Assembly (NCBI GenBank): GCA_907165135.1
Contig: OU015568.1
Coordinates: forward strand, 10,726,001 to 10,790,000
Direction: 5' to 3'
DNA: 64,000 nucleotides
DNA from: Oikopleura dioica
Taxonomy: Eukaryota > Animalia > Chordata
The notes under the pieces: generated by a model
Told to the model about the DNA's origin: nothing
Databases searched by the model: none
Seen by the model: the letters and a program-made list of their open reading frames with translations, nothing else
Shown: positions 21,355 to 22,926 of the stretch, piece by piece
Layout: each line of letters opens with the position of its first letter
Numbering within the stretch: position 1 is the stretch's first letter
Made by a program: the position numbers and the translations under genes

Positions 21355-22926
21355 TCAGGCTCGGTTCATAATTATGAAACCGGCGAAAACACCAGTGATA
21401 GAGAACATTGATAAATGAGTAGAGAACGTCATTGGGTACGGAGCGGTGATCAAGTAAACCCACGAAATGCCTAAGACCACAGATTAATTCTCTTCTTTTT
21501 TGTAAAGTGCTTACCTAAAATGGCGCCGATAGCTGGGACAAACCAACGAGTAATATCATCAAAGAAGTCCTCCTCGTCCAATTGCGGCGAATGCTGTCCC
21601 GTTCGAGGATGAGCACTCGTTCCTGCATTATTATTGCTTTCTTCAGGACTCGGCTCTGGAGGTAGCGTCTTATAAAAGCCGTGCATTGTGTCTCCATCTT
21701 TAACGCCGATTTTTGACATTTTTGCCTTGTCGTCCTTTAGCGTGTGGGAGAAGGTCCTCTCCTCTTAGGCATAGTAACTGGCTCGAATGGCGGACAAAGT
21801 CCCCGGAGAAGTAGTGCAGTGGTAGCACACCGGTTCATGAACACGGAGGTCCCTGGTTCGACCCCAGGCTTCTTCAATACTTTTCACTCGCCTTTGCCTG
21901 ATCCTACAAACTGGTGAAGACAGTGGGTTGTCTAGGTAGCCAAAACAAACCCTAAGCTGAGATTGACAAAGGTTCACTCAGTAGCTCAGGAGAAGCTGAA
22001 GGTTGGGAGGGTTGGTAGGCTTGTAACGGTTGGGGACCGTGGCACCAGACAAAGAACCAAAACCCAAGGCGGCATATGTAAGACGAGTTGTTAGAGCAGT
22101 TACTAGGGAGTTGTGGGAGAAGGTCCTCTCCTCTTAGGCATAGTAACTGGCTCGAATGGCGGACAAAGTCCCCGGAGAAGTAGTGCAGTGGTAGCACACC
22201 GGTTCATGAACACGGAGGTCCCTGGTTCGACCCCAGGCTTCTTCAATACTTTTCACTCGCCTTTGCCTGATCCTACAAGCGGCATGCCGCCAAAAATGAG
22301 ACAGAGACGTCTACGCTCTGTGGAGTTTTCAATGTTCTTTCCTAAATTATTCCCGCTTTACAGAAACGCCGGTAAATTTATTCATACGTTTGAAATCACC
22401 GAGACTCTGGCTCGGCCGAAATCTGCATTGAATCTCGCTCTCATCTAGAAATCGTATTTTTGTCGTTAGTTCCGGCTCTTCCAGATCTCCTTCATCGAAT
22501 AATTCCTCAGCTACTGACGAGGGCGACCTTTGGTCAGTGCTAGAATTTCCGCCATTTGCCGAGCTGCTTGCTCCCTGAGAAGATGGAGGCGCACTGGAAT
22601 TTCCATCAGAATTAACTCGCCGACGAAGCCCTTCGGGACTTCTTCGCAGTGAGGATGACTGCTCGTTTCTTTGCGCCGATGAAGAGTCGTGCACGATATT
22701 AAATGTTCCGCGACCGGGGATGTTGAATTGGCCCTCTAATTCATCTGGTGTGGACACTACAGAGGATTGGACATGATATTTCATCGGATAAATCGGATAA
22801 TTTACCTTCAGTACTTCTCCAAGCAAAAACAACAACGGCGCAAATTAAGCTGGCAACTATAGCCGGCAAGAATTTCTCACCATACTCTCCATAAAACCCT
22901 TCAAAATTCCCATACAGCGCCTCCAT
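21355..22926 (-). CDS. TMUB1: Transmembrane and ubiquitin-like domain protein (TMUB1/2-like), interrupted by a TRIM in this haplotype
   Basis: N-terminal TM segment ..LICAVVVFAWRST; UBL domain TTKIRFLDESE..PSQSLGDFKR..LCLIFGGMP|LKDDKAKMSKIGVKDGDTMHGF, rejoined after removing the insertion; two C-terminal TM segments. Paralog assignment is uncertain. Confidence 0.8.
21743..21908 (+). repeat. 5' LTR (166 bp)
   Basis: TG...CA termini. Identical by eye to 22112-22277. Confidence 0.95.
21805..21876 (+). ncRNA. tRNA-like Pol III unit in 5' LTR (degenerate anticodon arm)
   Basis: Acceptor GGAGAAG/CTTCTTC, D arm GTGC-AGTGGTA-GCAC and T arm CCTGG-TTCGACC-CCAGG all pair. The anticodon stem CCGGT/CACGG has two mismatches. 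TTTT follows a few nt downstream. Confidence 0.8.
21912..21927 (+). other. Primer-binding site complementary to a tRNA-Leu-type 3' end
   Basis: TGGTGAAGACAGTGGG, 3 nt after the 5' LTR. Its reverse complement CCCACTGTCTTCACCA has a CCA end and the CCCAC T-stem typical of tRNA-Leu. Confidence 0.7.
22112..22277 (+). repeat. 3' LTR (166 bp)
   Basis: Direct repeat of 21743-21908, followed by the AGCG TSD. Confidence 0.95.
22174..22245 (+). ncRNA. tRNA-like Pol III unit in 3' LTR
   Basis: Second copy of 21805-21876. Confidence 0.8.

Follow-up and report, generated by a model that had tools for sequence, protein, structure and literature searches.

A young, probably still active Helenus-type miniature LTR retrotransposon family in the tunicate Oikopleura dioica

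How might an element of only a few hundred base pairs, with no protein of its own and a tRNA-like gene lodged in each of its two long terminal repeats (LTRs), be transcribed, primed and moved? The question is raised by one such element in a 64,000-nt stretch of Oikopleura dioica DNA (hereafter 'the window'), where it had been predicted from the letters of the sequence. Taking the findings together, our best explanation overall, which we would put at a probability of about 0.8, is a young and probably still active family of Helenus-type miniature LTR retrotransposons (TRIMs; 'TRIMp3'), with transcription by RNA polymerase III (Pol III) and mobilisation in trans as its likely mode of life.

Architecture of the element and its tRNA-like unit

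Repeat comparison within the window recovered a direct repeat of 167 nt at 100% identity (21743-21909 and 22112-22278), a length explained by 166-bp LTRs plus one base that matches by chance. The two LTRs and the interior that they enclose make up an element of 535 bp (Table 1), in which the longest open reading frame is 81 aa; a 70-aa minus-strand frame running across the tRNA-like unit and the primer-binding site (PBS), which we judge to be spurious, had no homologue in a protein-level search. Each part of the TRIM structure set out in the original prediction (a pair of identical LTRs with TGTGGGA and TCCTACA termini, a 4-bp AGCG target-site duplication (TSD) on their outer flanks, a PBS, a short polypurine tract (PPT) and a lack of coding capacity) was recovered. 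The element is a protein-less LTR retrotransposon that integrates with 4-bp TSDs. At the PPT site, most other copies in the genome read AGGGGGAG, with one or two additional G residues relative to AGGGAG. The terminal sequence of U5 is also found at a few other repeat junctions, among them loci that read GATCCTACA-TT-TGG or GATCCTACA-G-TGG.

Table 1. Features of the element and of the exon that surrounds it, in window coordinates
Feature	Position	Strand	Basis or remark
Left TSD copy, AGCG, 4 bp	21739-21742	+	Sequence; single copy at empty site
5' LTR, 166 bp, TGTGGGA...TCCTACA	21743-21908	+	100% identical to 3' LTR
Putative U3, 62 nt, sole LTR part varying among copies	21743-21804	+	Variants at LTR positions 13-62
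tRNA-like unit of 5' LTR, 72 nt	21805-21876	+	ARAGORN, Rfam
A box of 5' LTR tRNA-like unit	~21812-21822	+	
B box of 5' LTR tRNA-like unit	21855-21865	+	
TTTT run, candidate weak Pol III terminator, putative R/U5 border	21881-21884	+	5 nt past tRNA-like unit
Putative U5, 24 nt, ending in integrase end GATCCTACA	21885-21908	+	Invariant in all copies
Interior, 203 bp, non-coding	21909-22111	+	13 interiors in genome; no long ORF
PBS-like motif TGGTGAAGACAGTGGG, TGG-starting	21912-21927	+	3 nt after 5' LTR
Polypurine tract AGGGAG, short	22105-22110	+	1 nt 5' of 3' LTR
3' LTR, 166 bp	22112-22277	+	tRNA-like unit 22174-22245; TTTT 22250-22253
Right TSD copy, AGCG	22278-22281	+	Sequence; empty site
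Host exon piece upstream of insertion (gene sense), reads RRRLCLIFGGMP	22280-22315	-	Contiguous with next piece in homologue P0002
Host exon piece downstream of insertion, reads KDDKAKMSKIGVKDGDTMHGF... up to stop	21471-21737	-	P0002 alignment

Both ARAGORN and Rfam call a 72-nt tRNA on the plus strand of each LTR (RF00005, 50.5 bits, E 1e-9, against a gathering score of 29), in agreement with the predicted Pol III unit and its two internal boxes. The B box, GGTTCGACCCC, is perfect and contains GGTTC, whilst the A box, TAGTGCAGTGG, is near-consensus, keeping TRG and YGG but missing the CY of Kojima's TRGCY motif. With a stem of 3 bp and a loop of 11 nt, the anticodon arm is degenerate, and for this reason we regard the unit as tRNA-like and not as a credible tRNA. 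A functional tRNA gene was rejected on account of this arm, the atypical anticodon assigned by ARAGORN (ATG), and a score of 50.5 bits set against the 63-75 bits of the genome's 63 best tRNA genes (63 scored of 3446 candidates). The minimum-energy fold of the unit is no better than those of shuffled sequences (z -0.73), and cmscan of positions 21500-22500, at E-values up to 1, listed tRNA alone and no 5S. In annotations, each copy of the element would contribute two false tRNA predictions.

Variation among copies and the proposed transcript

The genome holds 27 LTR copies, the window's own included, and 13 interiors, arranged as 11 full-length copies (one of them a four-LTR tandem array) and three solo LTRs. 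These represent 13 independent insertions on four large scaffolds, all with identical TG..CA ends; 12 of the 13 have a perfect 4-bp TSD of their own, that of E7 being imperfect (AACC/ACCC), and the solo LTRs are flanked by TSDs as well. In nine of the 11 full copies the two LTRs are identical, and in the remaining two they differ by one or two changes. The family is thus very young and probably still active, as first proposed, a view that the LTR identities, the TSDs and an empty insertion site (see below) all favour; nor does the window copy stand alone, and a structure that recurs at 13 sites lies well outside what chance would give.

Searches of the genome with the LTR and the interior matched the TRIM copies and one tRNA-like locus, and nothing else. 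This closest locus (L028) is single-copy and no related SINE family is present in the genome, and a SINE origin of the LTR unit was rejected on these grounds. A scan of marine metagenomes with a 21-mer from the T arm gave 35 loci, all of them unrelated tRNAs.

The insertions fall into several subfamilies, with one recombinant copy (E10) that combines the LTR of one subfamily with the interior of another, a mosaic that fits template switching of the retroviral type. Across the family we counted 27 inherited variant events, 12 at LTR positions 13-62 and 15 at interior positions 38-197, and between the two lies a block of 141 nt free of inherited variants (LTR positions 63-166 and interior positions 1-37) that takes in the tRNA-like unit, the T4 run, U5, the PBS and the leader. 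With uniform placement of inherited variants, a gap of this kind would have a probability of ~2e-6 over all 141 nt, or 7e-6 when only the LTR is considered. Private changes do occur in the block: a 1-nt insertion in the tRNA-like unit of a single LTR, inherited variants being zero among all 27, and a C>T at the tenth base of the PBS in one interior of the tandem array, again with no inherited variant at the PBS.

Synthesising these observations, we propose the following life cycle. Pol III would transcribe the genomic RNA, using as its promoter the A and B boxes inside the tRNA-like unit of the 5' LTR, a role that we infer from the sequence of the unit. The transcript would extend past the weak T4 run 5 nt beyond the unit and take in U5, the PBS, the rest of the interior and U3 of the 3' LTR. 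Its end would lie in the second T4 run, that of the 3' LTR, for a length of ~449 nt (21805 to 22253). Such a transcript would define an R region made of the tRNA-like unit and its trailer, with a U3 of 62 nt and a U5 of 24 nt. Minus-strand synthesis would begin at the TGG-initiated PBS, primed by the CCA end of a tRNA-shaped primer, with reverse transcriptase and integrase supplied in trans by an autonomous Ty3/gypsy (Tor) element. A point against this scheme is that RNase P and RNase Z would probably act on a tRNA-shaped 5' end and so remove the R region from the genome-length RNA.

On the plus strand of the element, T4 runs are found solely at 21881-21884 and at the twin position in the 3' LTR, each after a tRNA-like unit. 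The 365 nt between the two are free of T4, which is true of just 5-7% of window segments of the same length, although this absence is not significant relative to shuffled sequences of the same composition as the element (57% of shuffles). The latter comparison would suit a conventional TRIM, transcribed by Pol II from U3 or through read-through from a host gene, in which the tRNA-like unit is either a passenger (the relic of a tRNA-derived insertion, for example) or an RNA structure; so would the TTTT directly after the unit, which would end much Pol III transcription at ~80 nt, and the position of the window copy within a transcribed gene, albeit in the antisense orientation. We nevertheless consider Pol II transcription an unlikely explanation: it is the tRNA-like unit that has no inherited variant in 27 of 27 LTRs, whereas the preceding 50 nt, the expected place for a Pol II promoter, have accumulated 12 variant events, one of them a 10-bp deletion that did not stop its copy from transposing, and U3 is short whilst the B box is intact. 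Saying this, U3 is also the most variable part of the LTR in retroviruses driven by Pol II, and the pattern of variation alone therefore does not single out Pol III. Kojima likewise argues for Pol III in Helenus from conservation (PMC10886601), transcription by this polymerase having been left unvalidated there, with Cassandra as the only validated TRIMp3 lineage (Kojima 2024, PMC10886601).

Primer, source of enzymes and insertion site

The core of the PBS, TGGTGAAGA, is complementary to the ...UCUUCA end of the LTR unit plus CCA over nine contiguous nt (dG -19.6), a value reached by just 0.24% of random 15-mers plus CCA, and within the LTR the best partner for the PBS region is the 3' end of the tRNA-like unit. 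Leu-type tRNA genes pair with the PBS in two blocks of six (dG -18.4 to -18.8). The pairing is about equal and, as judged from the sequences, the primer is ambiguous between the element's own tRNA-like RNA with CCA and Leu-type tRNAs. An exact genome search found the 13-nt PBS complement in TRIM copies only, and among the genomic tRNA genes searched (Rfam scoring covering the 63 best of 3446 candidates) complementarity to the PBS reaches ~9 nt at most. A search with a canonical T-loop pattern returned, TRIM LTRs aside, 14 matches ending in TCTTCA; the three loci with the most tRNA-like T arms were rejected as primer tRNAs, since ARAGORN calls none of them a tRNA.

This rare nine-nucleotide match, with no tRNA among the TCTTCA ends checked (three of 14), could be taken to mean that the family is self-primed, such that a short Pol III product of the LTR undergoes tRNA-like processing, acquires CCA and then primes reverse transcription of its own element; published primer assignments for Helenus, moreover, frequently rest on 8-9 nt. 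We think this improbable. The templated part of the pairing is 6 nt only, the remainder being CCA, and Leu-type tRNAs do nearly as well; copying during plus-strand strong-stop synthesis should reset some PBSs, and a reset PBS is seen in none of the 13 interiors; the acceptor 3' end and the PBS are both invariant, leaving no paired changes to compare; and Kojima sought such pairing in other Helenus families and found none. The corollary, that a single Pol III unit might serve as promoter, R region and CCA-tailed primer, with a partner needed only for proteins, is to our minds similarly doubtful. If true, self-priming would be a mode of priming absent from all described Helenus families.

For the preferred reading, that of a Helenus-type TRIM mobilised in trans, a Tor or related gypsy partner is plausible because the TSDs of Tor elements (Ty3/gypsy, Oikopleura), whose insertions are hemizygous, are 4 or 5 bases long (PMC4402516). 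Apart from Tor, the genome has no plentiful supply of reverse transcriptase and integrase; integrase matches number at least 150. Among the patterns of the PBS 13-mer and the LTR-end/PBS junction sampled across the genome, no other element with either was found, and a sample of LTR-end/PBS and PPT/LTR-start junction patterns returned TRIM copies plus singles at chance level only. A pol family of 1726 aa (L087) has no LTR that could be found within 10 kb, and L088 has no recognisable TRIM-like termini.

The insertion site itself offers a view of the locus before the element arrived. In one contig from a marine metagenome (L089), which matches the flanks at 97.6% identity, window position 22278 is joined to 21738 with a single CGCT, and a second contig (L090) makes the same empty-site join at 80% identity; the insertion is missing from the corresponding site in a wild-caught relative. 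The homologue P0002 reads ...LIFGGMPLKDDKAKMSRIGVKDGDTMHGF... unbroken across the insertion point, and we therefore take the exon to be continuous there. On this alignment, the element has broken into a conserved coding exon, that of a ubiquitin-like-domain gene, and lies antisense to its host; the ubiquitin-like domain matches on P0002 are weak, and Pfam gave no match to either exon piece taken separately. Stop-free spans over the reconstructed empty sites of other copies were indistinguishable from background. Where exon-breaking insertions of this sort are hemizygous, a gene model drawn from only one individual may be misleading.

Lastly, the notion that two repeats so close together and 100% identical are an assembly artefact, or a local and immobile tandem duplication of a tRNA gene and its surroundings, is refuted, and has a negligible chance of being right, given 13 independent insertions dispersed over four large scaffolds with their own 4-bp TSDs and identical TG..CA ends, TSDs on the solo LTRs, and the empty site in an independent metagenome contig.

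Significance and comparison with known systems

Oikopleura dioica is kept in the laboratory and has a 64-Mb genome and a very short life cycle, with methods for RNA and for injection already established. With around a dozen copies, nearly all of them LTR-identical, and at least one that breaks an exon and is missing in a wild relative, direct observation becomes realistic: of the way in which a Pol III-made RNA might serve as the genome of an LTR retrotransposon, of the Tor element that would supply the enzymes, and of the RNA that primes.

Amongst known systems, tRNA-derived SINEs (SINE2) are similar in having a tRNA-like Pol III promoter, in being short and in needing an autonomous retroelement. 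SINEs, however, are without LTRs, PBS or PPT, move by target-primed reverse transcription and have a 3' tail and TSDs of variable length; this identity was rejected, since the Oikopleura element has LTRs, a PBS and a PPT, and its TSD has the constant 4-bp length that is typical of integrase. The Tf1/sushi type offers a likeness in the self-priming reading only, where an RNA of the element itself, and not a host tRNA, would provide the primer. In Tf1, the mRNA folds back so that its first bases pair with the PBS and prime synthesis, whereas the as-transcribed LTR here has just 6 exact complementary nt, and a distinct small RNA with a CCA tail would have to act as primer. Tor elements share the host, the youth of their copies, near-identical LTRs and TSDs of 4 or 5 bases, but differ in being autonomous, several kilobases long and Pol II-transcribed, and searches with the LTR, interior, PBS and junctions found nothing in common between Tor and the TRIM.

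Closer in design are Cassandra, known from plants, and the nemertean Ajax, with 5-bp TSDs (PMC10886601), both of which carry a Pol III small-RNA gene module within both LTRs of a TRIM; their module is derived from 5S rRNA, however, whilst that of the Oikopleura LTR is tRNA-like (Rfam: tRNA only).

The closest likeness is to Helenus (TRIMp3; Kojima 2024), whose families, of 311-1263 bp, have tRNA-like LTRs and, in animals, 4-bp TSDs (PMC10886601), just as the original prediction had stated. In common with Helenus, the Oikopleura element is short and protein-less, with a tRNA-like unit bearing A and B boxes in each LTR that is unlikely to be a working tRNA, a PBS after the 5' LTR, a PPT before the 3' LTR, 4-bp TSDs, solo LTRs and tandem arrays, and its 535 bp fall inside the reported range. 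It differs in its very low copy number (13 insertions, all very young), in the 9-nt complementarity of its PBS to its own tRNA-like RNA plus CCA, which Kojima did not see in Helenus families, and in its tunicate (appendicularian) host, the reported chordate hosts being coelacanth, sturgeon, paddlefish and ostariophysan fishes, with tunicates not among them (PMC10886601). In animal Helenus, mobilisation has been ascribed to a Gypsy-superfamily element with a common PBS, the partners being mostly unknown (PMC10886601); here, the sampled junction patterns revealed no gypsy element whose PBS matches. None of six motifs of 8 to 15 nt from the Oikopleura family is present in Kojima's DataS1, in which a positive control was found. 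Helenus is, though, defined by structure, with several origins thought likely (PMC10886601), so that a lack of sequence kinship to published members denotes a new family and not a non-member. The Oikopleura element is, then, a new Helenus family in a new host group, the tunicates, of an element type already described in 2024.

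Anatomy of the window copy and its insertion into a host exon

The original prediction described, at 21743-22277, a short retrotransposon with twin 166-bp identical repeats, TGTGGGA/TCCTACA termini, a 4-bp AGCG target-site duplication (TSD), a PBS, a short PPT, no coding capacity and a 72-nt cloverleaf with A and B boxes inside each LTR; this description is borne out by our analysis. A repeat search of the window returns a perfect 167-nt direct repeat, being the 166-bp LTR plus one chance-matching base, with the expected termini at both LTRs and AGCG on both sides, and the longest ORF inside the element is at most 81 aa. 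ARAGORN and Rfam place a tRNA-like unit in both LTRs, with a perfect box B (GGTTCGACCCC) and a near-consensus box A (TAGTGCAGTGG). The PBS region is also able to form a 5-bp hairpin (AGACA-GTGGGT-TGTCT, 21918-21933).

Features of the window copy and of the exon that it interrupts (window positions)
Feature	Position	Strand	Remarks
Direct repeat (167 nt)	21743-21909 / 22112-22278		100% identity
TSD (AGCG)	21739-21742 / 22278-22281		
tRNA-like unit, 5' LTR / 3' LTR (72 nt)	21805-21876 / 22174-22245	+	ARAGORN; RF00005, 50.5 bits, E 1e-9
TTTT run	21881-21884	+	5 nt downstream of the tRNA-like unit
PBS-like motif, TGG-initiated	21912-21927		begins 3 nt past the 5' LTR
Purine tract AGGGAG (PPT)	22105-22110		1 nt ahead of the 3' LTR
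Host exon piece	22280-22315	-	reads RRRLCLIFGGMP
Host exon piece	21471-21737	-	reads KDDKAKMSKIGVKDGDTMHGF... as far as a stop

The acceptor, D and T arms of the unit are regular. Its anticodon arm is cut down to 3 bp with a loop of 11 nt, its minimum-energy fold is not better than shuffles, and it scores lower than the best tRNA genes of the genome, which reach 63-75 bits (the best 63 of 3446 candidates); for these reasons we reject a credible tRNA gene and regard the unit as ‘tRNA-like’ only.

The flanks of the window copy are protein-coding on the minus strand, and a single host codon (CT/A) is divided by it; read into the element, the host frame meets a stop within a few codons. P0002, a 240-aa homologue from another assembly (69% identity), is unbroken across the site (...RRRLCLIFGGMPLKDDKAKMSRIGVKDGDTMHGF...), with weak ubiquitin-like domain matches at residues 93-175. 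The near-identical protein P0001 is encoded on a Tara Oceans marine-metagenome contig, which is 97.6% identical to window positions 22271-22900 and then passes straight to 21742-21693; here the empty site reads ...GGCATGCCGCT joined directly to GAAGGACGAC, with CGCT present once only. A second, more distant contig (80% identity) makes the same jump and lacks the element. Given the empty site in two contigs and the unbroken frame of the homologue, we conclude that the window copy recently entered a conserved coding exon.

The interrupted exon is immediately preceded by a host-gene intron of about 46 nt (22318-22365, minus strand), through which gene callers on the metagenome contigs of P0001 and P0002 read; the host frame is kept only if splicing uses an acceptor AG that lies two bases beyond the first one.

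Copies, subfamilies and an invariant block

The genome searched with the LTR and interior comprises 64,281,565 bases in 19 pieces, with the window at C1:10726001-10790000; the OKI2018_I69 assembly, from one Okinawan Oikopleura dioica male, is a haplotype-merged 64.3 Mbp in 19 scaffolds (PMC8008620). The LTR query returned 27 copies and the interior query 13, which resolve to 11 full-length elements, one of them an array (LTR-interior-LTR-interior-LTR-interior-LTR, C1:2724384-2725650), and three solo LTRs. Two of the three solo LTRs have common flanks, and there are therefore 13 independent insertions. The TG..CA ends are identical in all copies; 12 insertions carry their own perfect TSD (GAGT, AGCG, ATGG, GGTC, GATC, TTAT, CTAG, GTAC, CGAT, GGAT, GTAC, GGAC), and one an imperfect TSD (AACC/ACCC). 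That last belongs to one of two same-subfamily full copies lying 2.3 kb apart in opposite orientation (C3:540168-540709, minus; C3:542979-543519, plus), which are independent insertions, since their TSDs differ and their flanks are unrelated. Multiple insertions with TSDs of their own dispose of both an assembly artefact and a lack of further copies with distinct TSDs.

LTR pairs are identical in 9 of the 11 full copies, and differ by one or two changes in the other two. The LTR/PBS/PPT anatomy, the 4-bp duplications at integration and recent activity are facts of this family, as is its dependence on foreign proteins, which follows from its lack of coding capacity. Several subfamilies coexist in the genome, and one full-length copy (E10) has its LTR from one subfamily and its interior from a second, the kind of combination expected if reverse transcription switches templates between co-packaged RNAs.

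A variant seen in both LTRs of a copy was scored as inherited, having been passed on through retrotransposition. All 12 inherited LTR events, one of them a 10-bp deletion that did not stop its copy from transposing, fall at LTR positions 13-62, and the 15 inherited interior events at positions 38-197; across all copies compared, none lies in LTR 63-166 or interior 1-37. With uniform placement, the chance of such a variant-free region is about 7e-6 if only the LTR is counted, and about 2e-6 over the full contiguous 141-nt block, which holds the tRNA-like unit, T run, U5, PBS and some 20 nt of leader. We take this as a footprint of selection on the R-U5-PBS block and conclude that propagation of the element depends on it.

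Proposed transcription, priming and the search for a partner

Following the proposal made for TRIMp3 (Kojima 2024; PMC10886601), we propose that Pol III would initiate at the 5' LTR's tRNA-like unit, in part pass through the weak T4 run there and stop at that of the 3' LTR, to give an RNA of about 449 nt in which R would be the tRNA-like unit plus trailer, U3 62 nt and U5 24 nt. On the plus strand, the element's only T4 runs are those that follow its two tRNA-like units; the intervening 365 nt are free of T4, which is true of only 5-7% of equal-length window segments but of 57% of shuffles of the element's own composition. This placement, and the confinement of LTR variation to a dispensable U3, which an internal promoter does not need, are consistent with the Pol III model. 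U3 commonly varies in Pol II-driven retroelements too, which makes its variability support for Pol III rather than proof. A difficulty for the model is that an RNA with a tRNA-shaped 5' end would have to evade RNase P and RNase Z.

As to the primer, the exact 13-nt PBS complement occurs nowhere in the genome outside TRIM copies. A canonical T-loop pattern ending TCTTCA is found in the TRIM LTRs and at 14 other genome sites; of these, the three whose T arms look most like those of tRNAs proved on checking not to be tRNAs. Self-priming by the LTR-encoded RNA seems to us improbable on the sequences compared. The 3' end of the LTR unit with added CCA pairs with 9 contiguous PBS nt (dG -19.6, matched by only 0.24% of random 15-mers plus CCA), and no other part of the LTR pairs better with the PBS region. 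Against this, tRNA genes whose T-stem is CCCAC form two blocks of six with nearly the same stability (dG -18.4 to -18.8), and one group of five of them shares its 3' end with the human tRNA-Leu-CAA of Kojima's Fig. S2B; in none of the 13 interiors has the PBS been reset to LTR-unit sequence. Primers have often been assigned to published Helenus families on the strength of 8-9 nt, and Kojima found no LTR unit-PBS complementarity in any family (PMC10886601).

At least 150 integrase matches occur in the genome, many of them within long open frames that have the Ty3/gypsy order RT-RNase H-integrase; Tor elements, the Ty3/gypsy elements of Oikopleura, duplicate 4 or 5 bases of target on insertion and are frequently hemizygous (PMC4402516). 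Searches with the LTR and interior, the PBS and sampled junction patterns found no element sharing the TRIM's LTR, interior, PBS or junctions. The only lead to a partner is the U5 end GATCCTACA followed by TGG, seen at 16 sites outside the family vs 4 in the control, including small groups with identical junctions and one site 1.8 kb downstream of an integrase match. Groups in which this 9-nt end is followed by TT-TGG or G-TGG (C1:15305036, C4:3709261, C4:10279607, C5:1097996; C2:4213182, C4:12013650, C4:12016360) may represent further LTR families that share this integrase end, which would make them candidate relatives of the partner.

Two ‘solo’ LTRs with identical flanks (C5:16038752 and C5:16057306; loci L088:753-918 and L011/L012) sit inside a Tor-like gag-pol frame, which encodes a zinc knuckle immediately ahead of the LTR and protease, RNase H and integrase beyond it; the scaffold ends about 100 kb away. 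The two copies of the 3.1-kb segment around these LTRs are 99.94% identical. L088 has a third paralogous copy 8920 bp downstream, from which the 170 bp of LTR plus TSD are missing, so that it shows the empty site. Long tandem arrays of ~170 nt and 65-68 nt repeats lie between the Tor-like copies (L088:5164-7576).

A possible source of the LTR module, and comparison with Helenus

The closest genomic relative of the LTR unit is a single-copy tRNA-like gene about 105 kb downstream of the window copy (C1:10853572-10853643; L028:1501-1572); the two are 80% identical across 69 nt and have the T arm and the acceptor 5' strand GGAGAAG in common. This gene scores 51.1 bits; its anticodon stem is weak, its anticodon is UGA, a long variable arm is lacking and a T7 run follows. 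The LTR module may derive from this lineage; alternatively, the gene may be an unusual tRNA.

Every structural character of Helenus is found in this element: the TRIM form, the tRNA-like LTR, PBS and PPT, 4-bp TSDs as in animals, solo LTRs and tandem arrays. Helenus has been reported from six animal phyla, its chordate hosts being coelacanth, sturgeon, paddlefish and ostariophysan fishes only, with tunicates absent, and six motifs of the Oikopleura family are absent from Kojima's sequence file, in which a positive control was found (PMC10886601). On these grounds, the Oikopleura TRIM represents a new family within a known kind of element, from a host group new to that kind.
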